Positions 1 to 54,153 of a stretch of DNA of 64,000 bases are shown here, piece by piece. The number at the start of each line of letters is the position of its first letter. Within the stretch, counting starts at the first letter, position 1. Below the pieces are notes generated by a model. That model was not told the DNA's origin and ran no database searches. It saw only the letters and a list, made by a program, of their open reading frames with translations. This stretch comes from Penicillus capitatus (lineage: Eukaryota; Plantae; Chlorophyta), in NCBI GenBank assembly GCA_965649825.1, contig OZ287695.1:1663288-1727287 (forward strand), written 5' to 3'. Made by a program: the position numbers and the translations under genes.

Positions 1-1097
1 AAAACAAGTTCGGCGGAGAACCTTGCCAGATTATCATGGTCATTATGCCGGACTTCGCTGAAAGGGAAGGAAGAAGCATTGTCACGACCGAGGATCTCTA
101 CACAGAAGTCAAAGTGGCTTCTGATCAGCTGGTCGGCATTCCTTCCCAGTGCATCCGAACAACCAATGCAGGACTCGAAGGCAGAGCTGCCGACCACAAT
201 CGCCGTGCGTATGTTGCTAACCTGACGCTGAAGATCAATGCAAAACTCGGAGGCATCAACACGACTCTCTACAATCTGCAGGGCCAACAGCACCGCACAT
301 GCTCCTTCCCTTTGCTGGGAGACAGACCTTTCATGGTTCTGGGCGCCGACTTGACGCATCCACCACCCAGCAGCGAAGACAAGCGATCGGTGGTCGGTGT
401 CGTGGCCTCGATGGATCGAACGCTGTCCCACTATGCCTGTCGGACGCAGTTCCAGGAATGCACGGACACCGGCCGAGAGGTCATCCGAGATCTCAAGAAG
501 ACAGTCAAGGAACTGCTGAAGGCGTACTACGTCAAGAACAACGGAGTCAAACCCGAGGCGATCCTCTTCTACCGAGACGGCGTCTCCCAGGGCGAATTCC
601 CGAAGGTCGTCGAGCACGAGTACGAGGCCATCCGAGCCGCCTGTGCCGAGATGGGAGACCCGTCTGCCGAGTACTGTCCACCCATCTCCTTCATCATTGT
701 CTCCAAGCGTCACGGCATGAGATTCTTTCCCAGCAATTCAGCCGACGCCGACAGATCCGGTAACGTCTGTCCCGGTCTGGTGGTGGATTCCCATGTCTGT
801 CATCCACATGGCTTCGACTTCTATCTCGTCAGCCACACCGGAATCCAAGGCACTTCCAGACCGACGATGTACTCAGTTCTTATCGACCAGGTCGGTTTCA
901 AGCCAGACGATCTACAGTTGCTCACATACTGGATGTGCCATCTTTTCTGCCGCTGCACACGAAGCGTGTCGTACTGCCCGCCAGCATACTATGCGCATCA
1001 TGCAGCAGCCCGTGGAAAACTTCTCTGGACAAACAAATCTCGTAACACGGAGAATGCCGTACACCCTAACTTGGAAGACACTCTCTTCTTTGCGTAA
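1..1097 (+). CDS. AGO: Argonaute, C-terminal MID/PIWI part (5' end lies outside the window)
   Basis: Frame is open from the window start. PIWI motifs GADLTHP, GREVI, FYRDGVSQGEF, HTGIQGTSRP, CPPAYYAH; ends LFFA* as Argonautes typically do. DEDH tetrad intact. Confidence 0.97.
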   Translation, partial: NKFGGEPCQIIMVIMPDFAEREGRSIVTTEDLYTEVKVASDQLVGIPSQCIRTTNAGLEGRAADHNRRAYVANLTLKINAKLGGINTTLYNLQGQQHRTCSFPLLGDRPFMVLGADLTHPPPSSEDKRSVVGVVASMDRTLSHYACRTQFQECTDTGREVIRDLKKTVKELLKAYYVKNNGVKPEAILFYRDGVSQGEFPKVVEHEYEAIRAACAEMGDPSAEYCPPISFIIVSKRHGMRFFPSNSADADRSGNVCPGLVVDSHVCHPHGFDFYLVSHTGIQGTSRPTMYSVLIDQVGFKPDDLQLLTYWMCHLFCRCTRSVSYCPPAYYAHHAAARGKLLWTNKSRNTENAVHPNLEDTLFFA

Positions 1098-1916
1098 CTT
1101 TTGCTCGGTTGCTTCTAGACAATGGATGCAAAACGTAACGTTGCCTATTTTGCCACGCATTGTTTGTCCCAAATTTTGGATTAGACTTTGCATTCTTTTT
1201 CGTTTACAGTAATCACCTGATATGTTCAGGTCATGCAGAAACAGAGGGCAGTTTGGTAATGCATGAGGAGTTTGGTATCTATCCCTACCACTGTTATGTC
1301 CCCTTTCAAATTCTGTCTCCGAAGCAAATGCAGTACTCTACTTGCAGATGAACGCATTGCTCATTATCGTAGTAACTATTGAAGACGTATACGATGTAAG
1401 CTATCTTGGTCGTCACGAGGCCGACCTGCAGAGCTAAGATGCGTCCCTTGATGCACACGTTCCGCAATCGAAGATCTGTAAACGCCCCCTCTTGTCTGAA
1501 TCTTCAGATTTATCATCGGTACGACATTTTTTGTGTGACCTCGAGTGAGGCACTCCGATCGTCATCGTGGCCAATTGGGTCAAAGATCCGACAACCATCG
1601 ACGATGGTTTACCAAGAATTATTGCTCAACGCTTTACAAATAGGATGAGTGAGGACACATGAACACAAGAGAAATGATAGCATCGTGCACACTTTTCTGT
1701 GTTTGTATCGCATTCGAGATCATCTTTCAAAGGTTGTTCACAGAAAAGATAAGGGCAGTGCTGTTGCGATGGACAGGTCGACGGATGCTGATAGCACCTT
1801 CGGTTAGTGAACCGCTTTTCTCTTTAGCTTCTCCCAAACATGACGCATAGACATTACACCTATACGTCGTTTCCATGCCGGGAAGCGGAAGCGTGTCATT
1901 TTTCGCGAGCACCTCT

Positions 1917-3351
1917 TCATTCTCTGAGCGCCAGCTTCGCAGCAATCGGAATGTGATTCGAGGGCGCCATTGCATTGGGCATTGGTCGAAGCTTGACATG
2001 CCGTGGCAGTACAACAGGATCTGCTGTGTACGGCAGCTGCAGCGTCGACACCACATCAATGGTCCTGGGCGTGTAGAAGATATAATCTGAGACATCCCGA
2101 TACACTGGTGTGCATTTCGTCACGTGAGGCTCCAATCCACGCGCTCTGAAATAAGCACTTTCAAAGCGGAACGTCGAAGTGTTGAACTGCAGGCTCTTAA
2201 TACTGTTAGCCTGAATCGTGCCATTATGGTTGCGCACGTAGGGATGGTGCACATGCGTGTTTTCTAGTGTCCCCGATGTCAACAAACTGTAGATGCCACT
2301 GACGATGGAGCGATCCTCTACCCACTAGATATGACCATCTTACAGAAACGGAGAGAATGTGAACGCGATCGCACTTTGTCGTTTATATCGGTTGTCCATT
2401 TCTTCCAGTAAGAGGCAAAGTCGCCCAACACCACAGCTGGAGTTTCTCGCGGTCGAGATTGGCGTTTAAGGACGCTGTACATCGTCTCACATAAAACATG
2501 TATCTGGGCAACGCGTGCATCTGGCCAAGATTCATGTTCATAGAGATCCACGCCGCCAACCAGCACTTCCTTTTTGGAAGGGACATGGTGTAGCAAAGCC
2601 AGGGCAAATCCATCTCTCAGGCTGCGCAGACGTCGAAAGAACATCCCTACACAAAGAACCCTTTCCCACCGGAAGGCTGTGCTTAAGGGAAGTGGCTTAC
2701 CCTGTCCAGCAATCTCAAGATAATCGCGGAATGGGGCACAGACGGAAAACACGCGAACGAAAGAAGATCTCTTGTACATGAGGGCCACACCCTCTTCGAA
2801 GCCTTCCTCGACTTGAGGCTTTTTACAGAAATAAACGCCTTCGTAGCCGTTTTCGAGAAACCAAGGTTCGAGATCCTCTTCGAATATCACTCTCTCGACT
2901 TCTTGCAAACACAAGAGATCAGCATCCAGTCGTGCAATCTCACTCAAAATCCTCGTTCGTCGAGAAGACCATTTAACCACCTCTTTTGGGCAAAACCCAA
3001 CCTCGCTGCATGCACCCCATCACACACGACTGCTTTGATGAGAGAAGAGATGGCCTCAGACCCTTAGTTAACGTGTCATGGCGTCATGGAGTGTATCCGC
3101 GGACGTGTTGGTCATCATCGGCGCTAGAAAAGAGTGACTTACTGATGCGATGCGTAACAAGGCGCAAGGATATTGTATGTTGCCGCTTTGAACTGATGTT
3201 GTGGGGTGATCTGAAACCGCGATCGAAAATCCTTAACTGTTGGCGGCTCGTAGGGATCGACGACCTCGACGAGGGACTGCGACGCAAGCGCCCGCAACGT
3301 AGGCAACTGTCGTTGTAATAGAAGACCGGCGAGAGATCGGCCGGAAATCAT
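1917..3351 (-). CDS. CCR4/nocturin/PDE12-like EEP-family protein with a putative organellar transit peptide; multi-exon
   Basis: Motifs YNILAP (exon 1), LCLQEV, EGVALMYK, GDFAS, DYIFY, PSNH. N-terminus MISGRSLAGLLLQRQLPTLRAL is presequence-like. Intron ~3142-3006 joins YASH to HEVGFCPKEVVKW. Confidence 0.85.
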
Positions 3352-3364
3352 GATACCCTCTCCG

Positions 3365-4895
3365 TCAACACACCAAATTTGTAATAATGACGGAATGGGC
3401 AGGTCCTCGACACATGGGACACTGTCTGAGCTTTGTCATCTCCCAATGACGCTCCAGACATTCACCACAGTACACGAAATGCGAACATGGGAGAATGAAT
3501 GAGTTTCGGCGGCGTACCATGCAAATCTGACAGAGGGCTGTGCTTTCGTAGAGCCTCTGATACTTCTCTCTTTCTTTTCGCTGGCGCTCTGTCTCTGTCC
3601 TGAGCAACTCTAGTTCCAACTCCAGTTCAGAAATTCGTTCGCGACAGGCCATGAGTTGAGGAGCCTCTTCTAGTTGGTGGTGATGTGACTGAAGGGCAGA
3701 GGGTGGCGGCGGATGTGCATCGGCCAGAGTTGGCAGAACATCGCCAGGAGAATGCTGAGGCTCTGCATCGAAGTAGCTGTCAGGAGTAAGAACATCATGA
3801 CGGTCATTGATGCGACAGATGGGTCCTTGACTGAGTGGAGATGAGGCAGTCTGAGACACGGCGCTCATGGGTCTCTGAAAATCGACACCTCTCTTGGACG
3901 GAGGTTTGGCTCGAGCGGGAGCGGGGCTGCGAACAGGCGCTGCTCCTCGTGTCGCAGCTGGGCGGGGTTCCGGTGGCTCTTCACGCGAAGCGATGAGCTG
4001 CTGATGCCGTTTCGGAACGGAGGTGTGCAGATAGAGGGACCCTGAGGGAATGAAAGCCCGTCCAAAATTGCGACCCGAAGCCAAAGCAATGACAGGTGTG
4101 GCCATCACAGGATCCTCGAAGCCTGGTGTTGTCTGCCAGTAACGACAGTAGCAACAGTTCTCGAATGTGTTCGGTCCATAATGTACCCAGCCTTGTTGGA
4201 AGGGCATATCTCTCTCGAGAACCTCACTAGTCATCTGCGTATTCTTGCCTCTTCGAAAAAAGACGCGATCCATGTTCTCGGGTCCAAAGGCTGGTCCCAC
4301 AATAGGTTCGCGTGTGCAGGGGACTACAACAGAACGCAGCATCCCGTTTCGTAGACGATCGTTCGTCGTGCGGCACACCTTTTCTCTTGGCTTCGTTGGT
4401 GCCTGTCTTCTGGGTCGTCTCCTCCAATCGACACTCTCCCTTTTCTTCTCGTTCTTTTGGCGGCCTCTCCAACGTTTCTCGCTTCTTTTGCCCACGTTTT
4501 TGTGACGTCTTTCTATTAAGATGTTTCTGTGCGTCGTATTTAAGAGTGATGTGACAGGACAGGGTAAGATACCATTCTGCTCTGGCATTTCAATCGATGT
4601 CCCTTGTTCCGCGCAACCAACATCTGGCAAGCTCTGGTCAGAATTCGTTTGGGACACTGCCAGATGTCAGCAAACGGCAATGCAGAGGCATCGCCTATAA
4701 TCACATCTCTCTCGACACAGCTGCGTCAGGGTCGGCATATGTTCATTAGGGTTCGCATGTCAGACGTCGCCGTGCGCATCGCCGCCGCAACTCACTTTCT
4801 TTCGAGGTCTCTTCGGTATGGGGCAGTTCATCCCATTCGACACTCGTCGATTGCAGTTTCGGTGGGACGACATCGGTCGTCGAATCGGATGCCAT
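3365..4895 (-). CDS. C-terminal RING-HC (C3HC4, IAP/MGRN-like) E3 ligase preceded by a coiled coil
   Basis: CQIC..LPCSH..CGEC..CPMC at the C-terminus of ORF 3365-4657. That ORF begins at GTG; a likely first exon starts at ATG 4895 (inferred). Confidence 0.8.
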
Positions 4896-5054
4896 TTCGC
4901 AATCGCGACGACGCCACTTCAAACGAAATGACGAAACGCAATCATCGATTCGTCGATCTCTTGACATGATCACCATCCAAACCAGACACGTTCACCTCCT
5001 TCTCGGCGCATACCAGGCAAAGGACCGTCATTTAGGTCGTCTGGCACAATTGCC

Positions 5055-5593
5055 GTGCAAAGGAGAGATGGACGGCGGTCCACTGCTCGAAGGGATTCGA
5101 TCCTAACCCGAAACCGCCGCCCAAAAAACCGAAAGTGCTCTCCTCGATCGCATGGCCTCGTGCAGTACCGTCGTGCACAGAGTACGGCAAAAATGAACTT
5201 CGTTGAAGATACCAATGACGTTCGAGACGTTCGAGAGCCGAAAGGTTTTCAACAAGAAGTGCCATCCTACGTCACCAACCGCATGTTACGCCGAATCGCT
5301 ATCTTCAGTGGCGTTCCCGTTTTCCTCGGCATCTGTCTCCTCCCAGTCTTCTACTATCTCCAAGTCATTACCTGCATCGCCATTCCTCTCTGCAACGCAG
5401 GCATCCGTTCCAGGTGGCGAAAGATTTCAGTGTGCCGACGGTGCTTGTCTATTTCTGTCAGTTCCTTACATTTGGAGGCGGCGTGTTTGGCATCAGCTAC
5501 GCCATTTTCTCTACCAGTCCCGGCAGTCAAGAGGATTTTATTGGATTCGAGACATTCAAAGCCAATATCAAAAATCTCTTGGGCCGTCGGTAA
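5055..5593 (+). CDS. PAM68: PAM68 (DUF3464) thylakoid PSII assembly factor; start uncertain
   Basis: VPSYVTNRMLRRIAIFSGVP; a 50-nt intron (5364-5413) restores VAKDFSVPTVLVYFCQFLTFGGGVFGISYAIFST; stop TAA 5591-5593. Confidence 0.85.
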
Positions 5594-5609
5594 ATGCCCA
5601 TACACGCCT

Positions 5610-5876
5610 TTATCTCTTCTTTTTCTTCGGGGCCATCACCGGAGGGGTTTGCAGAATTTTGAGTCTGGATCCTTCATGAGCCACCATGGCCCGTGTCTTC
5701 TCTTCTGTCTTTTGTCCGACCATTTTGTGCACCGCCGTCTCTAATGCCAGCTGCTTCTGCGCCGCCTTCCGTTTAGGCGCCTTCACCACACGTCCTTTCT
5801 TTGTCTTGAGCGCTTTCGTCCGTCTCTGCGTTTTCTGTCCCTCGATCGGGCGTTTCTTGAAACTCCCTTGCGGCAT
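5610..5876 (-). CDS. UPF0390/DUF2462 (Leydig cell tumor 10 kDa protein-like) small basic protein, 88 aa
   Basis: MPQGSFKK...KKGRVVKAPKRK...LETAVHK pattern typical of the family; single exon. Confidence 0.75.
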   Translation of the reverse strand: MPQGSFKKRPIEGQKTQRRTKALKTKKGRVVKAPKRKAAQKQLALETAVHKMVGQKTEEKTRAMVAHEGSRLKILQTPPVMAPKKKKR

Positions 5877-5969
5877 CGCAGCGCTGAGAATGTGAAAAGA
5901 CGTGTGGGACCGGGACCCATCACTTCTGCGTCTGTTTGTCGAGTTCACCCATCGACGTCATCAGCCATC

Positions 5970-8900
5970 ATGCTTCGCGTGAACAAACACGTCCTCGGCA
6001 TCGCACAGCCTCGTCCCCTTGCGTCGCGCATCTTCCATCGACGCGTCGTGCGCCGTGGCGTCCATGGCGAGCAACGCATGCGTGTGTCGCCCTATCGTCG
6101 GCCAGTCGTGGCTGTCCACATCGGACGACGTGCCTTCTCTTCTGTCCAGTCCACAAATGCGCTACGCAACGTCGAATGCCACGCTCACAGCGACGTCCCT
6201 CCGGCGAAAGGCCTCTTCGATCCGAAGAACGACAGAGATGCATGCGGTGTTGGATTTATTGGCGAATTGTCCAAAAGACCGACGCGACGGTGCGTGGACG
6301 ATGCATTGGAGATGCTTCGTCGCATGACGCATCGCGGCGCTTGTGGATGCGAGGAGAATTCGGGTAGGGTTGCCACAAGACACATCCTGTCCCCTGAGCA
6401 TACCACGAACGATTCTCTGCTGTAGGCGACGGTGCCGGGATCTTGTGCTCCATTCCACATGATTTCTTCGCGGATGCGCTTAAGACGCAATACGACGTGG
6501 CCTTACCTTCAAATGGCGACTACAGTGTCGCGATGGTCTTCTTCCCAAAAGATCCTGAACTGCGCGAGAAATGTCGCAGAATTTTCGAGAACATTGCCGT
6601 CCTGCGTCATCACACGACACTCGCTTGGCGGAAAGTTCCTGTCAACGATTACAATTTGGGAAATGCGGCTCTCCGAACAGAGCCAGTTGTTGAACAGTGG
6701 TTTGTAAAGCCGAATGCTAACAGTACCTTGCATGTAGAAGTAGAGGTGCGATTGAAAAGTGTGAGATTTCTGTGCAAAAGAGTGAGAAATGTCTGTAGAT
6801 GTTCGTCGTGCGTCGTTTGATCGAAGTGGCATTGAAGGAAGAAGGAATTGATGACAATGAATGTTACATTTGCTCACTATCATCCAAAACAATTGTGTAC
6901 AAAGGGCAACTCACTCCTGCTCAAGTACGCGCCGCCCAAGAATGGCAGAGGGTGTATGTGACCGGGTGCTATGTTGCTGCAGTTGTCTTCTTATTATGAG
7001 GATTTGAATCATTCGCTCTTCAAGTGTTATGTGGCAATCATGCATCAACGATTTTCGACCAACACATTTCCAAGCTGGAACAGATCTCAGCCAATGAGAA
7101 TGTTGGCGCACAATGGAGAGATTAACACACTTAGGGGCAACAAGAATTGGATGCTGGCAAGAGAAGGCTGTATTGCAGCGGAGGCTCTTGGACTCTCGAT
7201 GAAGAATCTCGAGCGCATTTTGCCCTTTATTCCACCAGAGAGCTCAGATTCTGGAAGCTTTGACGCTGTGCTAGAGGTCATGACACGAAGTGGAGGCCGA
7301 GATGCAGCAGAGGTCATGATGATGATGATTCCTGAAGCCTGGCAGAACGACAGACTCATGCCTCAAGTCTCAGCCTCTCCTCTCTCCTTGCGTGTCATTT
7401 TGCTGTTCTTTAGCTCAAGAAAGATTTCTACAAGTATCACAGTGCGATCATGGAGGCATGGGACGGTCCAGCCTTGGTGACCTTTACCGACGGTCGCTAT
7501 ATCGGTGCCACATTGGATCGCAATGGATTGAGACCAGGGAGATACTATCTCACGAAGAATGGTCGCGTCATTATGGGCAGCGAAGTTGGCGTGGTCGATG
7601 TTCCACCAAAAGACGTGCTTTACAAGGGCCGTCTGAAACCGGGGAACATCTTCTTGGTGGATTTTGACGAGCACCGTGTGGTGGACGACAGCGAAGTCAA
7701 ACTCAAATACGCCAAGAAGCATCCGTATGGCGATTGGCTGAGACAGCAGGCGTTTTCCATGAGCGATGTGAAGAAGAGCATGGCTGGAGGGATGCATAAA
7801 GCATCCCCATCCGAAAACAATGGATCAACGATGAATGGTGTGCCTTCTGACAACGATGAGACGCGCGGGCCGTCTTTCGAAGAGTTATTGCCAAAGCTCA
7901 GGACGTTTGGATTCACACGAGAGTCTTTGGATATGCTGATGATTCCGATGGCACTCAAGGGCGCCGAACCCTTAGGCAGTATGGGCAACGATGCGGCATT
8001 GGCATGCATGTCCGATCGACCGAAGCTCCTTTCCGAGTACTTTAGGGAACTCTTCGCGCAAGTGAGAATCGTCAAAGTGTGACCATGATATTTGAAAGAG
8101 TGATAGGTGACGAATCCTGCCATCGATCCTTTTCGCGAGTCCATTGTGACGTCATCCAGATGTTTCATCGGTCCAGAACTGGATCTCACGACTGTGACGG
8201 CCAGACATGCGCATCGTCTGGATCTCCCTTACCCACTGCTGTCCATCGAAGAAATGGAATGCATTAAACGTATGAGCTTTGGAGGGTGGAAGACGAAGGT
8301 CAGAACCTCTAATGCTCGAAACGCACAACATTCCTGAAAAACGGTGTCTAGGTTATTGATACGACGTTTCCAGTTAATGGAGGAGAGACAGCACTGGAGG
8401 ATGCACTGAATCGAGTGGGCAACGAATCGCTGCAGGCCGTGGATGATGGATATCAACTGATTGTCTACTCAGATAGAGGCATCAACGCAGAGAGGGCTCC
8501 AATCAGTCCAATGCTTGTGATTGGACGCGGACATCAAGTTCTTGTGCACGCCAGAAAACGAACTAAAATCGGTAGATTCGTCGAGATTCCGTACGATGCT
8601 GGCAGACGTGGATGGTGACCAGGATTGCTGTGTGAGAGTGGCGAGACAAGAGAAGTCCATCAGTTCTGCACCCTATTGGGATACGGTGTTGATGCGATCT
8701 GTCCATACATCGCGATCGAAACACTCAATGCCCTCCACGTACATTTCCTGAGACTCGAACCTCGCCCTCTTATCGTTGGTGCGTTTAGGACGAAGGCAAG
8801 ATCTCAGATCAGATATCCAAGGAAGATATCTTCCTCCGTTACCGCCAAGCCATTGGAACAGGCGTGCTCAAAGTGATGGCCAAGATGGGCATTAGTACCT

Positions 8901-11900
8901 TGCAGAGTTACAAGGGCGCACAGATCTTTGAGATTTTGGGATTATCGGATGCTCTTGTCGAGTTCTGCTTCAGCAACACGCCCAGTCGAATTGGAGGAAT
9001 CGATCTCGATACATTGCAACGGGATGCTCTCTATCTACACAGTCTGGGATTCAGCAAAGTGCCGATGCCAGAAGACAGTGCCGAAGCACGATCTGTTCCA
9101 GACACGGGAGACTATCACTATCGCGAAGTGGGCAAGTCAGAGGAACACATGAACAACCCCGTTGCCATTCATCTCCTCCAGAAGGCAACACAAACAGATA
9201 GCTATGAAACATACAAGGAGTTTTCCAAACTCAATGGGGAGCTGTCTAAGAAATGCACGCTGAGAGGACTGCTCAAATTCAAAGAGTCGTCCAGTCCAGT
9301 GGCGTTGGAAGAGGTCGAACCTGCCAAAGAAATCGTCAAGCGTTTCTGCACTGGAGCCATGAGCTACGGGTCCATTTCTCTGGAAGCGCATACCACATTG
9401 GCTTTGGCGATGAATACGATCGGCGGTAAGAGCAATAGTGGAGAAGGGGGCGAGAATCCCAAAAGAATGGCTCCTCTCAAAGACGGATCGGAGAACCCGT
9501 TGAAGTCTGCCATCAAACAGGTCGCTTCCGGAAGATTCGGTGTCAATGCCTTCTACTTGACGGGCGCTAAGGAACTGCAGATCAAAATCTCGCAGGGGGC
9601 AAAACCTGGAGAGGGAGGGGAATTGCCTGGGCATAAGGTTCAGGGTGACATTGCCAAAACACGTCATTCCACGCCAGGTGTCGGTTTGATCTCGCCGCCT
9701 CCACATCACGATATCTACTCCATTGAAGATCTGGCTCAGTTGATCTATGACTTGAAATCTTCCAATCCCGCTGCCAGGATCAGTGTGAAACTCGTGAGTG
9801 AGAATGGAATTGGCATCGTGGCATCGGGTGTTGTGAAAGGCCACGCAGATCACGTCCTCGTTTCGGGGCACGATGGAGGAACAGGCGCCGCCAAGTGGAG
9901 CAGCATCAAGCATGCCGGCCTTCCTTGGGAATTGGGTTTGGCTGAAGTACAGCAGACGCTTGTTGCAAATGACCTGCGCAGTCGTACAGTCCTTCAAGTG
10001 GACGGGCAGATCCGAACAGGCAGAGATGTCGTGATCGGTGCCCTCTTGGGTGCCGAGGAGTATGGCTTCTCTACGGCTCCTCTGATCACGATGGGATGCA
10101 TCATGATGCGAAAATGCCACACGAATACCTGTCCCGTCGGCATTGCCACTCAAGATCCAGTTCTCCGCAACAAGTTTACAGGGGAACCTGAACATGTGAT
10201 CAACTACTTCTTCATGGTGGCAGAAGAAGTCCGCGAGTACATGGCGCAGTTGGGCTTCAGAACAATGGATGAGATGATTGGACGTGCCGATTGCTTGGAA
10301 CCTAACAGAGAGTTGATGGACAGTCATCCAAAACTCAAAGGCATTGATCTGTCCAAAGTCATCATGCCGTCTTCCGAACTGCGCCCTGGAGCAGGCCAGC
10401 GTTTCTCACTCTTGCAGGAACACGGTCTTGAATCCTCCCTGGATCCGCATCTTCTCCAGGCGAGTCGCCCGGCCTTGGAAGAGATCAAGAAAGGATCGGT
10501 GCAGCCGATTGATCTGGAATCAAAGATCTGCAACGCCCATCGATGCACAGGGACTACATTGAGCCATGAGATCACGAAGATGTTTGGCGCCAAAGGTCTT
10601 CCGGACGACACCGTTCGTGTGTTCCTTTCGGGGCATGCCGGGCAGAGCTTTGGCGCCTGGGTATGCCACGGCGTGACACTTGAGTTGGAAGGTGATGCGA
10701 ATGACTACGTGGCTAAGGGACTCTCTGGAGGTCGTATCATTGTCTATCCTCCTAAAGATGCAGATTTCCTGGCGCACAGAAACATCATTATCGGCAACGT
10801 GGCTCTGTATGGTGCTATCAATGGAGAGGCTTTCTTCTCGGGGATAGCGGCAGAACGCTTCTGTGTGCGGAACAGTGGAGCCAACGCTGTCGTGGAAGGC
10901 GTTGGAGATCATTGCTGTGAATATATGACTGGCGGCATCGCCGTCATTCTGGGAGAAACTGGCAAGAATTTTGGCGCTGGTATGTCTGGCGGTATTGCTT
11001 ATGTCTACGATCCCATGCGCAAATTCCTCTCTCTTTGCAACGATGATATCGTTGGAGACATTGTCGAAGTGACTTCTGAGGAGGACGAGGCACAGCTCAT
11101 GTCTTTGATCCGCAATCATGCAAAGTACACTGGCAGTCCTAGAGCTCGTGAGATTTTGAAGAGTTGGGATCAAGAGAAGATCAATTTCAAAAAGGTCTTC
11201 CCCCACGATTACCGCCGTGCATTGGAGGAATCCAAAGAGATTCAGAAAGCAAAGGAAGTGGAGAAAATGATGATCGAAGCGGCCGGACTGGAGGAGACCG
11301 ATGCCTTCGAAGAGCTGAAGCAGATTGCCGCACATGCCACCATCGAGCACCCACCACCTCCGCTTTCCCTCGAGAGAGTCTCCGAATCTCCCGAAGTCGA
11401 CAAGAGACGACTGCTCTTGGACGCTGAGCTGGGCAATCCTGTTAGAGGACGATCGCCGACATGGGACGAAGGTCGGCCGACAGTCATGAAGAAGGGCGAA
11501 GCAGACAAGCACGGAGGATTCATGCATTATGAGCGACAACCCTTGCCGTACCGACCAGAAGAGGAGCGCATGCAAGACTGGAAGGAAGTGGTGGCAGATA
11601 TGACCTCCGAGAGTCGTGAGGATCTGTTGCATACACAGGCTGCACGGTGTATGGGTTGTGGCACACCGTTCTGTCATCAATCCCATTCTGGATGTCCTTT
11701 GGGAAACAAGATTCCCGAATGGAACGATTTGGTCCACAAAGGCCGTTGGCGCGATGCCTTTGATCGACTGCTGGAGACAAACAATTTTCCTGAATTCACT
11801 GGACGTGTCTGTCCTGCCCCGTGTGAAGGCGCTTGTGTTTTGGGCATTAATCAGAACCCAGTCAGCATCAAGACGATAGAACTGAGCATCATCGACAAAG

Positions 11901-13081
11901 CGTACGAAGAGGGCTGGATGAAACCTCGTCCTCCTCAGGTCCACACAGGCAAAGCGGTGGCGATCATCGGCAGCGGTCCGGCTGGATTGGCCGCAGCTGA
12001 TCAGCTTAATAAAATGGGCCATACGGTGACGGTCTATGAACGCGCTGACCGTGTGGGAGGGCTCATGATGTACGGTGTTCCGAATATGAAGACAGACAAG
12101 GTCGATGTTGTGCAGAGGCGCGTTGATATCATGGAGCAGGAAGGTGTGCGGTTTGTCACCAATGCGCATGTGGGAGTCGATATCTCCTCTGGTGAGATTC
12201 TGGCCTCCAACGATGCCGTTTTGTTGGCAGCTGGTGCCACAAAGCCACGATCTCTGCCAATTGAAGGGAAGGATCTTAAAGGCATCCACTTTGCGATGGA
12301 TTTCTTGACTGCCAATACCAAATCGCTGTTGGATTCTCAACTGCAGGATGGTCAGTACATAAGCGCCGCCGGCAAGAATGTCGTCGTCATTGGAGGCGGA
12401 GATACAGGCACGGACTGCATTGGCACAAGTGTCAGGCACGGTGCCAAGAATGTGATCAATCTGGAATTGTTGGACAAGCCTCCTCCAACGCGTTCTGAGG
12501 CGACTCCGTGGCCTTTGTGGCCAAGAATGTTCCGTGTGGACTATGGCCATGCGGAATCCGCCAAGAAATTTGGCCACGATCCACGCGACTATAATGTCAT
12601 GAGCAAGCGTTTCCTCGGAGACGACGAAGGAAATGTTGTTGGCATCGAAGTCGTCCGTGTGAAATTTGAGAAAGATCCCGAAACTGGAAAATCTCAGTTG
12701 GTAGAGATCCCCGGTAGCACACAAGTCATCGAAGCAGATATGGTTTTGTTGGCTCTCGGATTCTTGGGTCCCGAAAAGACGTTGGCCGATGCTTTTGGAC
12801 TGGATACAGATGCACGCAGCAACTTCAAAGCAACCATGCGCGATTTCAGCACAAGCGTTCCAGGAGTCTTTGCTGCGGGCGATTGCAGAAGAGGACAGTC
12901 CCTCGTTGTTTGGGCCATCGCTGAGGGCAGAAAAGCCGCAGATGCCATCGACACGTAAGCCTGCCCTCTACCGAAGGGTCTTGTCAAGACATGGCTGCTG
13001 TTGTGATGTAGGTATTTGACAAAGGACGTTACGGAGGTCACACAAGGAGCAGTGCTGGCAACAACAGCCAGGGAAGAGTAA
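5970..13081 (+). CDS. GLT1: NADH-dependent glutamate synthase (fused large and small subunit GOGAT), plastid-targeted
   Basis: DACGVGF (N-terminal Cys nucleophile), [73 protein letters not shown]. About 9 short introns; a final intron after 12955 restores AIDTYL, stop at 13079-13081. Confidence 0.98.
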
Positions 13082-21400: not shown

Positions 21401-22085
21401 TGGCGCGACAATGAGAGTATCGCACCGACACGAGCGGTATCGCGAAGACGATGCAGTTCACCACTCAACGAGGCGAGCAACGGAGACACTGTCCACAGCA
21501 AACACCGAGTCTGCAGCTCGGATAGGCTCAGAACTGCACGGAGGACTTACGGCGTTGAGGAGAATCGTAGATGCTATTGCCTCCTGTCATCTCGCCGGTC
21601 GAGGATGTCAAAGGCGACGACGGGCACTGGTTTGACGATTTTCACGGTTGGATGCTTTGCAATGCGATGCAATCCGCTTCGTTCGTTTCCGAAGCAAACG
21701 CGGAATCCAGATCGATCACGGCTCACGTATCCGACATGCTTTGATGCGCATGGAGGGTTCTCGCCTCGATAGCACACGACACATACATGCAACGGTTCTC
21801 CTTTACACCTAGCGGCCTTGTGTTTCGTCTTTTCCGTATCGGGCGATCGACGACGCTTGGAAAAAGGCGAGATTGACGACGCCCGACAAACCATCTCGAA
21901 ACCTCGGAGACTCTCGGGATTTGGTCTCAGACGAACGCACGTTCTCGCTCACGTCATCGAGAAACGAGATTTGGTTTGTACACTGCACAACCCCGTGCCC
22001 GTTCGTCAAAGAAGTGCCCACTCGCATACGAGAGTGAGTTCCGTGGATATGCAGTTGACCCGCCATGTGTCGATTCAGTCTCCGG

Positions 22086-23237
22086 TCAGAGGAGGAACAC
22101 CGATTCCTCAACGCATGTCACTCGAGTGGTGCCGCAGCTCTGTGCGCAACTGTAGACGGCAATAGACGACCAATCCCATTCTAAGGAACAGACATATCCA
22201 GAACGAACAGCTTTCTGGATGTCGACGCGCTCCATAGATCCATTGTCCGACTGAAACCACACAGCCGCTTCGTAGAGCGCTCCAATGAAATGTGGCATGA
22301 GTTGCATCTCGTAGACGCGATGGCTGCCACACTCTGGACAGCAACTCGGTCTAGGCACCATGTTGGTTGGATTCAACAGAGGCGCATGGAAGCCGTAACG
22401 AACGCATTGTTGGGGACAGGCTTGGATTCGTTGCTGGAATCTCCAGAAAGCGCCATCATCGACGGCTTTGTAATCAGCCTTCTCATAGGTTTCGTTCTGC
22501 CAGGATGCATCTTCGCTTCCTTTGGTCGTCACTCGCTCGTACCTCTCCAGCGACGACTGAACACGCAGCAGATCTGTACAGTCATCTTTGATGCTCTCTT
22601 CGACAGGAGGCTCTCTTTCGGCATAGATATGAAATTCAGGCAAAAGAGCTTCTCTTTCGATCTTTGCTCCGCCAACCGGATGACTGCCAACAGATGTTCT
22701 TTTTTTCTTCGACGGTTTCTTGCTTTTCTTCTTGGGTGCAGATTCCAGCGCCTCTCTCAGTCCTTCCAGAGAGAAAGATGCATTTTCTGTCATCGGTTTC
22801 GTCTCCTCTGCCAACTCTTTCAAGAAAGAAGGAGCAGTGGCGTTCTCTGTAGAGGCGAGTTGGGTTGCTGGACGCGTCGTCGAATCAAACTGAATTCGGA
22901 AGCATTTCCAGCATCTCTGTTCTTTGCCGCATCCTTTTCGAACACATCCGAAGACGAAGAGCCATCTTTCAGGGCAGTCATGTCCAATCTGATTGCGTTT
23001 CAACGGGGCATGTGTCTATCAGCGGAGATCAGAGATGCACTCTTTCCATTGGAAAACGCCTCTTACTTGCAGTGCCAATGCCAACGGATCTCCACATACA
23101 GTGCAGAACGCAGACTCGAATACCTCCCGACGACAGAAGGTCGGTAGGATGGGACAGCCGCCGACTTTGGTGCCATAGACATCCGGCCTCTCTTCAGAAA
23201 CGATGTAGTCCCCCGGAAGTCCGATAAACACGTTCAT
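22086..23237 (-). CDS. PDCD2L: PDCD2-like (uS5 chaperone family) protein
   Basis: TKVGGCP, CTVCGDPLAL, LFVFGC, FQQRIQACPQQCVRY, CPECGSHRVYEMQLMP, DWSSIAVYSC. Confidence 0.88.
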
Positions 23238-23376: not shown

Positions 23377-25035
23377 ATGGCTGCTATTCGTTTTACGCAG
23401 AGAACCGAGTTAAATGCCTATGTTTACAATACAGAGCACACAGTTGATGTGCTCATCACGATAAGGGCTGACAGATTAGCCCAGGAAGAGAATCGAGCAC
23501 GGTTGTGTCTCAGTGCGGCTATCGACCGTTCGTCCTCAATGCGTCGGCGAAAAATCTCGCTCGTCAAGAAAACGATGCAGTTTGTCGTGCGGCAGCTCTG
23601 CGAGACGGACCGCCTCGGACTCATAACTTATCACACAAACGTATACTAACCCCCATCATTACACAAGTCACACTTTTGACATGCGTTCGCGAACAGGCAG
23701 AAGAAGTGTTTCCGATGACGAACATGACTGCCGAGGCGAAGCAGAAGGGAGACAAAGTCGTGCGGAGTATCCAGAGCGACCGGTTCACCGATTTGTCCGG
23801 CGGACTCTTCCAGTCCATTAGCCAGCTCAAGAGATCCCTTCCAAATGATGAAGATGGCAATCCAGGTGGCATCCCTACTGCCATGTGACCACAAAGCATG
23901 TCTGTTTATTAGGCCCCGTTGCCGCGGTCCTGCTTCTGACAGATGGTTTACCGACAAGGGGCATCAGAGATCCTATGATACTCAAAAATACATTGAAGGG
24001 TGCATTGAGCATGGGACCGCCAATCAAGATCCATACCTTTGGCTACGGCAGCGATCACGATGCAGAACTGCTGAAGGATTTGGCAGACATCGGCGGCGGA
24101 AACTATTATGCCATCTCAGCCGATACAGATGTTCCCACATTCTTTGCCGATGCTCTGGGCGGCCTCGTCTCCGTCGTTGTCCAGAACATCGTTGTAGATA
24201 TCTCTACAGCTCGACGCGATGTCCAGATCCAAAAGATCTTCACAGGATTAAAGATCGAGGGGAAGGAGGATGGAAGCTGGTCTGTGCGTTCAGATGATCT
24301 CTATGCCGAAGAGCGTAAAGATATCATTGTGCGTTTAAAGATTCCACCTTTGCAGTCTCCTGTCGAAGCAGAAGGATTACTTCATGTCCAACTCTCCTAC
24401 TTCGACGTCCAAGAAGCACAGAGCATCACAAACGAAGCTGTTGTATGTGTCAAGAGACCGGAAATGATCGTGGGGGATCAAGTCGCCGATGAAGATTTCT
24501 TGGACCAACGTCTCCGTGTGGAAGTGACTGATACCATCGAAAAGGCAACCAGTTTGGCAAACACCGGAAACCTGACGGGTGCGCTGAGACGTGTCGATCG
24601 GCAACTGGAAGATGTGCAACAGAATCATCATTCGGAGTATGCCAATGCTGTTCTCTCCGATCTCATCGAAACGAGAAGCGTCGTCTCCGATGCCGAGGTA
24701 AGATCCATATCATTGCACTCGATCTCGATTCGTGGTGTCTGATGCCGAAGGTTTATCGATCGAGTTACCATTCGCTGTATCGTATGGCAAGTTCGCATGG
24801 TAATCAGCGAGGATCTTCACACTTTTGGTCAGACATTCAATGCCGCAGTATCGACGGAGCTCAACAGTCTGTTTTTGCCAATACGCGTACTCTGTCGAAC
24901 GCATCAAGTGGCATCAATCCGCCGTTGAGTGTTGCACCCAATGCCAACGGACAGGAGTGTGAATCAAACCATCGTCTAGATAGTGGATCTGCTTTCAATC
25001 CACCAAGATCGCAGAGCTCGATGAACGCTCCGTGA
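23377..25035 (+). CDS. von Willebrand factor A domain protein with a Vwaint-like C-terminal helical domain
   Basis: MIDAS motif DRSSSM, TDLSGGL, LLLTDG, IHTFGYGSDHD, GGNYY, FADALGGLVSVV; C-terminal SSHGNQR. Confidence 0.88.
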
Positions 25036-33445: not shown

Positions 33446-36400
33446 TCAGGAATTAAGACGCTTCGTCTCATCTCCAATAGGCTCATAAGGAACATTTCCA
33501 CCAGATGCACGATTTGCAGCTGGGGGCTGAGAATCCACAAAGCCGGGTGAGATGTATGCTTCTTCGGGATCGACAGCTGCCAGATCGTAACGATGATATG
33601 AGCGCCCGAATGCAGAATTGATGCGATCCTGAGCACCCTGCACAACAGTACGTACGCCAGGTGCATACTCATAGATCGTCTCGCGCTTTCTGTAAACAAT
33701 AAAGGCAAGGAAGGCGAGGAAGGCGAGCACGAAAAGGACAATGAAGAATGTGGCAACGCCGCTCTTTCCTTTCTTCTTGTGCGGCACATCTTCGGACTCC
33801 ACTTCTGTGTTTGTAAAGAGTCGAGCACTTGAGCTTTTTGCAGAGCTCTGGTCTTCTTTGGGGTCAGAATGAGATCTATCGGATTTGTCTTTATGCGTAG
33901 TGGCATGTCCATGCGTCGTCGAGTCTCCAGAATCCCATTTGTGTTGAGTACAGACGGATGGACTGGTGAGAGTACAGACATAGTCCTTCTCTATGCGGCA
34001 ATTGTCATCGCAGCCATCCCCATTGACGCGGTTTCCATCATCACAGAGCTCGGTTGCTTCCAGAATGCCATTGCCACAATGGTGCATCCAATTAGGCACG
34101 ACCCACTTTGGCTCCGACAGGATTCTGAGAGTATTTCCATGTCCCGTTTCGTCCCTGACCGTGTATCCACTTCCCTCATCGAATTTCCACCACGCCACAA
34201 GATTTGGATCCTTTTTGCTGATGTAGTCGCTTTCGACGCCAGATCCGACGTTCATGTCATGTGTCATCCCATCATAGATCTCTGCACTCGAGCGGGCAAC
34301 ACGCCAGATACGAACCTCTTCAATGAGCCCATAGAAGTCCTGGGGTCCGTACTCCAAATTCGTCACGGCCTGGACATCTCCCGTAGCACCGGGCGCAGAG
34401 TCGAAGCAGCCACCAAGGCAATCCTGCTCGCGTCCAATAACGAGGGTTCCTCCGGCAGGAATCTTCTTTCCTTTGGCCCGAGCAACACGCCACTGAGCGA
34501 TGCCGTTGTCATAGAACACGGCATTTCCCGTTTCGCTCTCCCAGGTGACAGCAATGTGATGCCACTTGCCATCCGTCGAAGAAAATCCTGCGTTGTGATC
34601 ATCTATCGTTCCTTCATCTTCCATCACTGAGATTCCCCAGTTGTTGTAATTGAAGATGAGGAAAGCGTTGTCATTGGACTGGTACTCTCCATGTGCATAG
34701 GAGAACGGCACACCTTCGCGACAGGCATCGATACTCCACATCCAAAACTCGACCGTAATGGCTTCCGATGGAAAATCATGGAAATTACGCAGCATCAGCA
34801 ATTGCTTATCGGTGAGTTCAAGGACGTAGCCCATGTATCCCGGTTTAGGAAGCTCTGCAGGGATACCGTCGGCATCCGACAGGGGTACAGTCGAGAACTG
34901 GAAGGCAGGTGCCACGGATCCAAGTTCGAGATAACGGTTGCCGTTGTCGTCCATGACACGCCGACCACGCTCGACGCTTCCGACGAATTGGGTTTCTTCG
35001 AAGATAAAATTCATGACCAGGCCATCCTTGTTGTCTGGCCTCTTCTCGAACATGTTCTTAACGATCTCACTCTTTGTGAGAACGCGATCCCATATACGGA
35101 CGTTTGCCATGGAGCCATCGTAAGACGAAGCTGGCGAGAAGCAGCCTGCAACGCATTCCTGGTTCTGACCCAGAACCAAAGATCCGACAGCGTCTCGAGA
35201 CGTCTTGGCTGCCAGTTTGTTTGAGACACCCCCATTTTTCGGATCTTCATCTGAGATTTGGCCGTTGGCCGCTCTCCAGAAAGGTTTCACACTTTCTCCA
35301 TCAAAGTAGAGATTCACTTCTCCTGAACTGTGCTTCCATGTCACAGCCAAATGATGCCACTCGTCGTCCGTCCTTAACACAACATCACTCGGTCGTATCA
35401 TGAATCATCCATCCATTGACAGGAACGTACCAATCCGTCGCAAAGTCTAACCAATTGTCGTTCGCTTTTCCGTTTCCTTGACGATTGGAATTGATATGGA
35501 CAGAGACAGAGCCCAAGGTATTGGTCTTGGCGTTCCTCAAGTACTGGGATTCGTTGTATTCCATCAAGTAACGTTCAATTCGAATGGCATCATCGATGAG
35601 CACCGAATCTGCAAAGCCTCCGTCGTTGTCCGTATGCCCATCACCCGGCTGAATGGTTGCATAAGATAAGAACTCGGCGTGCTGTTCACTGGACACTCCA
35701 TGGGAGCGAATTGGTCCACTTCGTGCCCAAAACTCAATCGTGATATCCTCCGAAGGCATGCCCATAATGTTGGGATTAAAGGCATGGTTGTTCTTGAAGG
35801 TCAATGCTCCCGTTTCCATGTGATTGTCTTTCTGTCGGATCATCACATCAGAGCGACTCGGAGGAACCAGCAAATCCAAATGGTTGCCCCGTCCACTGGA
35901 GTCCATCACCGTACCATACTGCTCAAATTCATCTGTTCCTGGATCATCAAATTTCCAGTAGGCGATGAGCGCGTCTCTGTTTGGCATTTCGCCCGTTGCT
36001 AGAAAAGGACTAACCGTTAACAGAAGGAAAGGTGCAAATTGCATCGTACATCTCATAGTGCTCACGATTTCGTCCTGTGAGCGGGCAACGTTCCATATTC
36101 TGACCTCATCCATGAGACCGTAGAATCCTTGTTTGGGATCTGTGCATCCTCCATAGCAATCCTGCTCACCTCCAAGCATAAAGGATCCTCCCGGCTGTAT
36201 CTGCTTGTCGCTTCCGGTCGTGGCGCGGCCAGCCAAACTGCCATCGATGTAGACAAGAGTTTCGCCATCCCTCTCCGAATCCCACGTCACTGCCAAATGG
36301 CGCCACTTACCTTCACGACGGACCAGTTTTCCTGTCGTGGGATTAAAATCCGTCTACAGACAGACATAGAGCGTAAGAGCCGTAGAGTCTGAGAGCAGAG

Positions 36401-51866: not shown

Positions 51867-52020
51867 CTGAAGATGGGACAAGATGATACATAGATAGCGA
51901 ATCTCCGGAGAGAACGTCACATCAGATGCGTCGCACTGATCCAGACAGAACGATCCAAGACTAAACTTGAGAGACTAATAGATACTTTCAACACGGACGA
52001 GCGTAAGTGAGCCTTCGCCA

Positions 52021-52420
52021 TCAAATGCCATCCATACAGCAAACGCCACAAGCAGAATGTTGCCCAGCAGAAGGAGCTAGTCCGTTCTGAACCAGACCAA
52101 GGGTCTGACTCTGACCAAATATGTGAATTAGGCGGACGACTCGGGGATGGAAGTCGTCGTCTCTGCCAAAACGCGTGCGTTCGTTATTGTCGCACAGCGG
52201 CGGCTTGTGCAGTGGCCCTCCCGCTGCACAGACGCCTCCAAAGGAGACGTCAGGAGGACGGATTCGCGTACGGACGCAGAGGAGAACGGCGAGACCGGCC
52301 TGGCGCTGGAGGAGACGTCGGGCGAGTTCGAGTCGCCGCAAGACCCAGGGCGTATGCGTCCCTTTGGCCGAGTGGCCGCCTCCGAGAACGCAGATGGCGT
52401 CGTCGTCGTCGCGCGCCCCA
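52021..52420 (-). pseudogene. DUF218 (YdcF/ElyC-like) gene, apparently degenerate
   Basis: DAICVLGGG..PWVLRRLELA, GGPLHKPP and LVQNGLAPSA are recognisable, but the usual E..S.DTIGNA and TS.FH segments cannot be recovered intact. Confidence 0.55.
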
Positions 52421-52657
52421 GTCCCTCTGCCGAACTCCAGCTCAGGCACGCAGCCGCGCCGAGAGCAGATCCGTCTAAGGATCCGTCCTTCTAAAAGATC
52501 CGGGATGGGAGAGCGGCCGTTTACGGCCCCTTGGCAAGGTCGCGGCGTCGCGCACAGGTCAGGCGTCGCAAGTTGAATGATAGCCGAAGAGCCACACATT
52601 TCATGAGAACAGCGTCGACTTAGGAACAATCGAGTGAGTGGTACATTGTGGACGTCG

Positions 52658-53961
52658 CTATCTGCCGGAACGCATCGCCTTCTTTGCCTCTGCCTCGCTC
52701 AGATTGGGAGCCGTTTTCAGCAGGCGACGCAGGACGTGGTCGGGAGCCGTCTTCCCGTCCTGACGCCTCTTCTTCTGGGAGGGGTCGCTCGATGCACGGC
52801 ATGCAGCATCCTTCCCGGAGGACGAGACCTCGGTCGTCGATTCGACGGCTCTGTGCCTCTTCACTGCGCCGCCGTCTTGCGCCCGGCGCTTGGGAGCGAT
52901 GCCCAGTCTCGTGATGTCGTTTCTCTGATCCTGCAACACGTTCCTGAGATCGATGGCATGGCGCATCACGGCGTGGCGCTGCTGGATTTCTGGATCCGAC
53001 AAGCTCTCCACGTGGACGTGCATCGCAGCCGAGATCAGGCTCTGCAGTCGGGGGATGAGTCTCTTGTGCATCGACTCGAGCGATTCCAGGAGATACTCCT
53101 CCACGGCCGGATCCATACACTCCACCTCCTTCGGAGGGATATCCTGAAATCCGTGTTTCCCACCCGAACCTGCCTGGTCAGTGCCCTCCTTGGCAGCTTT
53201 CTCCCTGCGGCGGAACAGCTCCTGTTTCGAGGACACGGGCAGGTCGTCCCACTCCACGGAGCACTGCTCGTGTAGATCAAGAGCCTCTGTGATCTGCGTT
53301 CTCACGCGGTGACATTCTGCGAAGAGCTCGTTCTTCTGAGACAGGGCCCGGCGGTATGCTTCCTGCTGTCTCTCCCTCGACCGAATCTCGCTGAGGGGCA
53401 CATACGGAGCCGAGCCGTCCGGCAGTGACAGTTTCAGATTCTGCTCGACGTGATGACAGGCCATCAGAATCTGGGTAAGTATTCCCTACTAAGCTTCTCG
53501 CCAGCATGCGGATGATGCTTGCTCACCTCGGGATAGAGGTGACCAAATCGGCATCTCCACGTCGCAAGCGCGTAAGTCATGCGATGTTCCAGGTTCTCTA
53601 GCGTTTCCGCGGACATCGACGGTCCACTCGGTGCATCTCTGATGCAGCAACAGTTCACGAGTCGTTCGAGTCGCCACGCAGCGACGCGGCGAAAAATCTT
53701 CGAGCGAAGGAAGAATCGGTCAACCAGGTCCAACGTGTGACACCTTGTCTGCACACAACGTGTTTGTTATCCCTGTATCGGCCGACGTGCCTGCGCATCT
53801 GGAATCTGCAACTGTGTTAAGAGTGCGTCAGCGACCGCCTCGGCCTCGGTGTCCTCCCTTGCCGCTTTGAGGTAAGATGTGAGGCGGTCGCAACTCTCCT
53901 CCCTGAGCGCGAACGAAGTTGCTGGGCACGTGAATGTTGAGACCAGAGATTCGACTTTCAT
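52658..53961 (-). CDS. UVSSA: UV-stimulated scaffold protein A homolog (transcription-coupled repair), apparently C-terminally truncated
   Basis: VHS-like LVDRFFLRSKIFRR..WRCRFGHLYPE, central AIDLRNVL..RLGI, RRLLKTAP; stop at 52658 precedes the expected zinc finger. Confidence 0.72.
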
Positions 53962-54153
53962 AATGACGATGACAAAGTGATCTGCGCGTACAGCTCTCTG
54001 AATGTTCTGATTCTCTCTATTGTTTCTCACGGCAAGGTGAGCAATAGGTGCCCAAGTTGCCACGGCCGTCGGGCTTACATTGGTGTGTTGGCCGACAAAA
54101 ACGGTCGCCGTGGGCAAACAACCGTCAACGACGTAGTATTTTGGAACAAAACT

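Follow-up and report, generated by a model that had tools for sequence, protein, structure and literature searches.

A candidate natural bicistron in a green alga: a CCR4-type nuclease gene that opens 13 nucleotides after a RING gene

In the 64-kb stretch of Penicillus capitatus contig OZ287695.1 analysed here (the window, abbreviated W), a gene for a C-terminal RING protein and a gene for a CCR4-type nuclease follow each other on the minus strand with only 13 nucleotides (nt) between the stop codon of the former and the start codon of the latter. These are two complete, unrelated and selectively maintained genes in a conserved arrangement. On sequence evidence, the locus is a candidate for a natural bicistron based on reinitiation after a long open reading frame (ORF), and a single bicistronic messenger RNA (mRNA) combined with short-range post-termination reinitiation is given a chance slightly short of even. 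This estimate was obtained roughly as the product of two others, namely that a mature bicistronic mRNA would be the main source of the second product, which is considered moderately probable, and that reinitiation would be the route given such an mRNA, which is considered distinctly probable. According to the proposed scheme, the RING and CCR4-like genes would constitute one transcription unit. Its promoter region would lie 5' of the RING gene and also serve, in the opposite direction, a PAM68-like gene, and its poly(A) tail would be added beyond the CCR4-like stop codon. Ribosomes would translate the RING ORF of about 390-400 codons (ORF1) and terminate at its TGA, and a fraction of the post-termination 40S subunits would remain bound to the mRNA and reach, after 12-14 nt, a second AUG at which they reinitiate. 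The output of the second ORF (ORF2) would be a smaller quantity of a CCR4-family nuclease-domain protein with an organelle-type presequence. That one mature mRNA carries both ORFs, that reinitiation takes place and that the ORF2 product is targeted to an organelle are inferences.

Read along the minus strand, the junction runs ...AAT TTG GTG TGT TGA-CGGAGAGGGTATC-ATG ATT TCC..., from the RING gene into the CCR4-type nuclease gene. The RING stop codon TGA occupies 3367-3365, the 13-nt inter-ORF spacer CGGAGAGGGTATC occupies 3364-3352, and the ORF2 start codon, the sole in-frame ATG of exon 1, occupies 3351-3349. The gap between two long same-strand ORFs that had been described in an earlier note, made from the letters alone, was reproduced in both its coordinates and its spacer. 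Neither a promoter, nor a 5' or 3' untranslated region, nor a poly(A) signal could fit into the junction. An in-frame TGA is found 87 nt upstream of the ORF2 ATG, at 3438-3436 (minus strand). In addition, the ORF2 start codon forms part of an ATGA (3351-3348, minus strand), in which a TGA of the third frame overlaps the start; in W, all upstream frames close within 16 nt of the ORF2 AUG. The same ATGA is present at two of the syntenic loci described below (L002 and L004), and at a third (L005) an in-frame TGA directly before the ORF2 ATG takes its place.

The bare succession of a long ORF, a gap of at most 40 nt and an ATG-started ORF is common, with 11 occurrences in the 64-kb window, and it is by homology that the RING/CCR4-like pair is distinguished. 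Five of the ten other such pairs were scanned against Pfam; three look like single genes split by an intron (one with DUF1749, the others with Gpi1 and SNO domains truncated at the ORF edge), and the remaining scanned pairs had no match. The RING/CCR4-like pair is counted as real because homology shows its stop and its start to be the natural, conserved termini of two proteins that are not related. Separate Pfam domains and the conservation of these ends in orthologues uphold the initial view that the two genes are distinct and complete.

ORF1 (3365..4588, minus strand) was assigned by Pfam and orthologue alignment. Its frame extends over 430 codons from stop to stop, or 407 amino acids (aa) from the first ATG (4588), and contains a RING finger (zf-C3HC4_3, PF13920; Pfam E 1.6e-11) at residues 374-422 of the 430-codon frame (3392..3538, minus strand), which the orthologue alignment identifies as the most conserved part of the protein. 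A 60-nt intron is probable at 4572-4513 (minus strand), where a 2-nt indel in L002 stays in frame only if the segment is spliced; its removal would give a protein of 387 aa. The ORF caller reads straight across this probable intron because the segment is stop-free and a multiple of three. The start context TTGA(A)ATGCC (Met-Pro) is common to W and L004, and the context TTGAAATGCC places a G, hence a purine, at -3. At the other end, the C-terminal sequence ...CRGPAHSV(I/M)(I/L)TNLV(C), followed by the stop, is kept in six of six aligned orthologues, two of which have no nuclease gene downstream. Between W and L002, the ratio of nonsynonymous to synonymous divergence (dN/dS) is 0.26 at a synonymous divergence (dS) of 0.32, which indicates purifying selection.

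ORF2 (1917..3351, minus strand) encodes, according to a spliced model supported by an orthologue, a CCR4/EEP-family nuclease-domain protein of 397 aa. Its four exons (3351-3143, 3005-2701, 2646-2375 and 2324-1917) are separated by introns of 137, 54 and 50 nt. The product carries an Exo_endo_phos domain (PF03372, Pfam) and can be aligned over its whole length with the nuclease domains of yeast Ccr4 and human CNOT6L/CNOT6 (PDB, E 1e-18 to 1e-16; 1.6e-18 for yeast Ccr4 and CNOT6L). The Caulerpa lentillifera orthologue P0001 (g2538; 401 aa, 56% identity) supports all three splice junctions, and this standalone protein begins at the position equivalent to ATG 3351, with a similar basic presequence. 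The earlier note had reasoned that a true CCR4-like start lying further downstream, together with separate monocistronic mRNAs, would undo its case. ATG 3351, the only candidate in exon 1, instead matches the orthologue starts, and the next Met falls inside the catalytic domain, past the YNILA and LQEV motifs. Furthermore, the ORF2 model maps onto L002 without gaps or stops (dN/dS 0.23 at dS 0.41, W vs L002), and because of this purifying selection ORF2 must be expressed, though it has no intergenic DNA of its own.

The first 20 residues of the ORF2 protein include no acidic residue, three Arg and seven Ala or Leu in W, and 3-5 Lys or Arg with 0-1 acidic residues in all five lineages; this N-terminus appears to resemble an organelle-targeting presequence. 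Among the catalytic motifs, YNILA, LQEVE and the His are present, GDFN is changed to GDFA and SDH to SNH. The motifs of the Caulerpa orthologue are likewise non-canonical, with GDFA and with SSH in place of SDH, and both proteins are without a leucine-rich repeat domain. Judged from these features, the ORF2 enzyme may have an altered activity and an organellar location.

Comparison across lineages was based on the syntenic region from five other sources (loci L001-L006, of which L002 and L003 were treated as one lineage). The nearest DNA matches were long contigs, found in metagenome assemblies of ENA (two) and in Logan assemblies (three), with the closest loci in ENA ERZ25074695 and ERZ26696514 and in SRA runs SRR33785046 and SRR20820735. 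At L001, which is about 99% identical to W, the junction again consists of TGA, the 13-nt spacer CGGAGAGGGTATC and ATG. L002/L003, where the RING protein is 86% identical in amino acids to that of W, have TGA, CGAAGGGGGTATC (13 nt) and ATG; L004 (RING 54% identical to W) has TAA, ATCTTGTTTTTC (12 nt) and ATG; and L005 (RING 50% identical to W) has TGA, ATTTTTAATCCTGA (14 nt) and ATG. At every junction-bearing locus the ATG opens the orthologous nuclease exon 1. The 12-14-nt junction is kept in four lineages (W/L001, L002/L003, L004 and L005), although the sequence around it has diverged. The spacer itself is not conserved in sequence or composition: purines prevail in W and L002, pyrimidines in L004, and A and T in L005. 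The frame of ORF2 relative to ORF1 also varies by lineage (+1, 0, +2).

The Caulerpa branch does not share this arrangement. At L006, where the RING protein is 42% identical to that of W and 66% to Caulerpa g4579, no nuclease gene was found in the 960 nt after the RING stop. In Caulerpa lentillifera itself, the RING orthologue g4579 adjoins the NADH-GOGAT gene g4578, as in W, and the nuclease gene g2538 lies elsewhere in the genome. Synteny in relatives, by which the earlier note had proposed to judge the pair, shows a junction that recurs in four lineages and is absent in the Caulerpa branch; on this distribution, the RING and CCR4-like genes were joined, or separated, once. A search of JGI metagenome contigs for further syntenic loci returned only two distant compost RING-domain matches, which are not orthologues.

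The distribution of the pentamer TGTAA, taken in the earlier note as a chlorophyte poly(A) signal, is informative about the extent of the transcript. In the window, TGTAA follows 8 of 13 ORF ends within 360 nt, against a background of 0.58 per kb per strand (binomial P about 9e-4), an enrichment that agrees with this role. As had also been observed at the outset, there is none between the RING stop and ORF2; the first after the RING stop lies at 2827-2823 (minus strand), 537 nt downstream and inside ORF2 exon 2. The first TGTAA after the ORF2 stop, a candidate poly(A) signal, lies at 1854..1858 (minus strand), 58 nt downstream of that stop. At L004, the first TGTAA past the RING stop is reached only 79 nt after the ORF2 stop. 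Given this distribution, one poly(A) site after ORF2 is the simplest reading. Elsewhere in the window, the first TGTAA is reached 60-360 nt past a gene end, and several hundred nt separate one gene pair from the next. The genome is thus not extremely compact, and the tight RING/CCR4-like junction is a local exception.

What the locus offers in sequence is a long ORF1, a stop, a short linker and an AUG without a dedicated cis-element, the anatomy of the constructs of Onishi and Pringle discussed below. Two hints of such an element had been raised earlier, and neither survived comparison. The TGGGA at 3441..3445 (minus strand), which recalls the core of a termination upstream ribosome-binding site (TURBS), was confirmed at its stated coordinates; it consists of the Trp-Glu codons of a conserved HWE motif, as seen in the orthologue alignment. 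It is present in W, L002, L005 and also L006, where the genes are not adjacent, and is replaced by TGGAA (Trp-Lys) in L004; the same Trp-Glu pair is encoded by the orthologue in Caulerpa, whose genome keeps the two genes apart. A TURBS motif as a conserved signal was accordingly rejected. The purine-rich spacer, considered as a Shine-Dalgarno-like element, was rejected on the grounds that composition varies between lineages, that of L004 and L005 being of the pyrimidine-rich and AT-rich kinds noted above.

A conserved RNA structure at the junction (a motif 2/2* stem) was rejected as well, since only W folds significantly: folding z-scores were -2.9 in W, -0.4 in L002, -1.6 in L004 and +1.3 in L005, and the folds differ. 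In the W hairpin (3355-3400, minus strand; 120-nt fold), the stop and spacer UGACGGAGAGGG pair with the upstream CCCAUUCCGUCA. This hairpin is weaker in L002 and missing from L004 and L005, hence lineage-specific, and the linker, which is base-paired in the fold of W, is free of structure in L002 and L005. Synonymous sites point the same way. Over the last 60 RING codons dS is 0.30, compared with 0.32 for the whole gene (W vs L002), so that there is no excess synonymous constraint. This uniformity argues against a sequence-specific promoter or an element resembling an internal ribosome entry site (IRES) in the RING 3' end, and fits a mechanism that depends on proximity and not on a sequence element. 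A spliced-leader (SL) operon, which would need a trans-splice acceptor (an AG after a pyrimidine tract) between the cistrons, is not supported, as the L004 and L005 spacers contain no AG; Rfam gave no match at the gathering threshold over the whole window, SL RNA included.

Among the other ways of expressing ORF2, a pair of overlapping transcription units is a serious rival, although rather unlikely. The CCR4-like mRNA would then arise from a promoter within the RING coding sequence, and the RING mRNA would run into, or end within, the CCR4-like gene. Same-strand overlapping units exist in compact genomes. The nearest upstream RING-frame ATGs, at -64/-88 in W and L002, would allow a leader of less than about 64 nt or, with the last RING-frame AUGs included, an upstream ORF (uORF) of 17-25 codons; the nearest upstream ATGs in L004 (-60/-67) and L005 (-35) make a short leader or uORF possible everywhere. 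The uORF route would also explain the small stop-to-AUG distance and, because the uORF ends at the RING stop, reinitiation would in that case follow a short ORF and not a long one. W, L001 and L002 also possess a TGTAA at 537-538 nt past the RING stop, which is likewise compatible with separate units. Such a promoter would, however, occupy the most conserved part of the RING coding sequence, where dS is nearly that of the whole gene (0.30 vs 0.32). Moreover, a RING-only mRNA in L004 would find no TGTAA until ORF2 has ended, and intergenic space was never gained in four lineages. Less probable still, yet also a rival to be reckoned with, is a shared promoter with alternative splicing, by which a 5' donor in the RING gene (e.g. 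4572) would be joined to an acceptor near or in the first codons of ORF2, so as to remove the RING ORF and leave a monocistronic CCR4-like mRNA. Short GT-AG introns of 50-137 nt occur throughout the locus, and inspection by eye revealed AG dinucleotides within the W and L002 spacers and, in L004, a TACTAAC, a pyrimidine run and a TTAG just 5' of the second in-frame ATG. The acceptor is nevertheless not conserved, as the L004 and L005 spacers have no AG; the sole AG common to all lineages, about 55 nt upstream, belongs to Arg-Gly codons that are also present in the non-adjacent L006, and in L005 an ATG intervenes.

Leaky scanning from the cap along one bicistronic mRNA is an experimentally supported mechanism in green algae (PMC11892635), and the host is a chlorophyte; at this locus it is nonetheless regarded as very improbable. 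Between the ORF1 and ORF2 starts there are 20 ATGs in W, 14 in L002, 21 in L004 and 12 in L005, compared with 17.1, 13.3, 17.8 and 12.1 expected from base composition. On its way a scanning 40S subunit would meet 12-21 AUGs within 0.9-1.2 kb and have to bypass all of them, the observed/expected ratio being 1.0-1.2. ORF1 measures 915-1224 nt across the four lineages, about 3-4 times the median ORF1 length of known loci, and its start has a purine at -3. The signature of leaky scanning, a short and AUG-depleted ORF1, was not found; because ORF1 is long and not AUG-depleted, leaky scanning is unlikely, and the earlier judgement that it is implausible here extends to all four lineages. Least credible is a single gene, whether a RING-nuclease fusion by splicing, read-through or frameshift, or a product of mis-called ends. 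In W, a 67-nt interval GTGTGT...ACGACAG (GT 3373...AG 3307) would join the two frames if spliced. Its acceptor CAG is, however, CCG in L002 and L003, the C-terminal residues of the RING protein are unchanged where the downstream gene is lacking, and the Caulerpa orthologues g4579 and g2538 are separate. The in-frame 67-nt intron was rejected on these grounds, that is, the loss of the acceptor in L002/L003, the variable frames and the ancestral RING C-terminus. Since the relative frame differs among lineages, a fusion by read-through or frameshift could not be conserved. A mis-called start is opposed by ORF2 exon 1, which has no other ATG in W or L005.

Several considerations weigh against a bicistronic mRNA translated by reinitiation. 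Reinitiation past long ORFs is generally inefficient. The junction is limited to four related lineages and represents a single event, and the TGTAA 537 nt past the RING stop, inside ORF2 exon 2 of W and L002, might terminate an mRNA that carries RING alone. Neighbouring introns also hold their length within about 10-15 nt and, because of this, the conservation of spacer length is weak evidence of selection on its own. No RNA-derived orthologue was seen in the protein collection searched, and a look-up of the exact 70-aa product of ORF2 exon 1 returned no record. Finally, leaky scanning, and not reinitiation, accounts for the tested algal bicistrons (Duenas et al. 2025, PMC11892635). The fuller proposition, that the locus is a natural bicistron at which ribosomes reinitiate after a full-length ORF of normal AUG content without a TURBS-like element, yielding a probably organelle-targeted enzyme, is put forward tentatively.

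A further feature of the locus is a box C/D small nucleolar RNA (snoRNA)-like element in ORF2 intron 1 (about 3053..3122, minus strand), conserved in four lineages. Its parts are a terminal stem GCC/GGC, a box C TGATGA at 3117-3112, a box D CTGA at 3059-3056 and a guide-like stretch, AACTAAGGGT, that immediately precedes box D on the 5' side. All four lineages keep TGATGAC and the 17-nt AACTAAGGGTCTGAGGC unchanged, and the rest of intron 1 has diverged; the corresponding elements lie at about 7220-7290 in L002, about 5110-5175 in L004 and about 2240-2315 in L005. Rfam returned only sub-threshold generic C/D matches for this element. With a snoRNA within ORF2 intron 1, the supplying transcript has either to run across the junction or to begin within the RING gene, and the locus would yield three products.

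The surroundings of the pair were also characterized. The NADH-GOGAT ORF (8864-12958, plus strand) is 79% identical to Caulerpa lentillifera g4578 and 64-69% identical to the enzymes of Chlorophyceae, Trebouxiophyceae and land plants. From these identities the window is chlorophyte, with a bryopsidalean ulvophyte as its closest relative in the searched databases, in keeping with the chlorophyte origin that had been supposed from the letters. The gene order GOGAT, DUF2462, PAM68-like (DUF3464), RING (window ~1-13000) is conserved in L001-L004 and L006, and the GOGAT-RING adjacency extends to Caulerpa (g4578/g4579). The downstream neighbour is a convergent Argonaute/Piwi gene in W and L002; in L004, a same-strand acetyl-CoA synthetase ORF begins 130 nt after the nuclease stop, with a TGTAA between. 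Elsewhere in the window, two other tight pairs were observed. At 21809-22793 (minus strand), a PDCD2_C ORF (22793-22086) is followed after 19 nt by an ATG-started ORF of 85 aa, and at 23975-25035 (plus strand), a VWA_3 ORF (23975-24742) overlaps a 97-aa ORF via TGATG. The second ORFs of both pairs had no Pfam match; additional exons, ORFs arisen by chance and further bicistrons are all conceivable readings. A large ORF pair at 33446-36296 (minus strand) contains Pentaxin / Laminin_G_3 (concanavalin-like lectin) and DUF4215 domains, an unusual set for a green alga, and the G+C content shows a local peak of 0.59 at 52001-54000, compared with about 0.50 in the whole window.

The interest of the locus lies in the fact that algal nuclear polycistrons are currently explained by leaky scanning over a short, AUG-poor ORF1. 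The question of algal reinitiation after long ORFs was raised by the short-linker vectors of 2016, and the RING/CCR4-like locus provides a natural, conserved test case with a built-in comparative control, the same two genes being separate in the Caulerpa lineage. A literature search found no report of nuclear polycistrons in the ulvophyte lineage. If reinitiation is the mechanism, efficient long-ORF termination-reinitiation would be a normal green-algal capacity and a second route to polycistrony beside leaky scanning, and nuclear polycistrony would reach the ulvophyte/Bryopsidales branch. Rules for eukaryotic gene annotation would have to be widened, and a minimal natural linker would become available for bicistronic transgenes. 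If an internal promoter is responsible instead, the locus would be a clean case of a promoter embedded in conserved RING-domain coding sequence.

Altogether, the locus can be set beside several known systems. In caliciviruses and influenza B, a TURBS mediates reinitiation after a long ORF where stop and restart are close or overlap, and its motif 1, UGGGA, is complementary to helix 26 of 18S rRNA and lies 40-90 nt upstream of the restart. A long ORF1 and, in W, a UGGGA about 75 nt upstream recall this system. Stop and start are here close, at 12-14 nt, but do not overlap, and no conserved motif 2/2* stem was found. Microsporidia and nucleomorphs have compacted genomes in which transcripts overlap adjacent same-strand genes. 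The junction resembles theirs in having virtually no intergenic DNA, although the present genome is not extremely compact. Bicistrons of the CDC26-TTM3 type in plants and algae likewise pair unrelated proteins in a deeply conserved manner, but their ORF1 is very small and uORF-like, whereas ORF1 here encodes a full-size protein (PMC11892635).

In the way it would work, the locus most resembles the green-algal bicistrons (Gallaher et al. 2021, PMC7896298; Duenas et al. 2025, PMC11892635). Like the RING/CCR4-like pair, they have a chlorophyte host, colinear and unrelated conserved ORFs in unrelated frames, an inter-ORF gap far below normal intergenic distances, a colinearity conserved across species, as is also found here, and one apparent poly(A) signal after ORF2. 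The documented cases have ORF1 medians of 291-357 nt, AUG observed/expected ratios of 0-0.7 and inter-ORF medians of 40-183 nt (PMC11892635), whereas ORF1 here is about 1.2 kb and not AUG-depleted, and the spacer is 12-14 nt. They differ, too, in being defined by full-length transcripts, the present locus being known from DNA, and the Caulerpa-related ulvophyte lineage belongs to a group unsampled in the two studies. The synthetic bicistrons of Chlamydomonas are engineered, only the APHVIII marker worked as ORF2 and their mechanism was never proven, yet they share with the present locus, which would be their natural counterpart maintained in evolution, a long, AUG-containing ORF1, a stop, a short linker and an ATG without an IRES. 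With linkers of 6-10 nt and an ORF1 of up to 654 codons, ORF2 was expressed without any special element, at a lower level, which Onishi and Pringle (2016) credited to post-termination reinitiation (PMC5144980). Duenas et al. considered leaky scanning dominant at the loci they tested, with some reinitiation not excludable, and argued that leaky scanning contributes in the short-linker constructs as well (PMC11892635).

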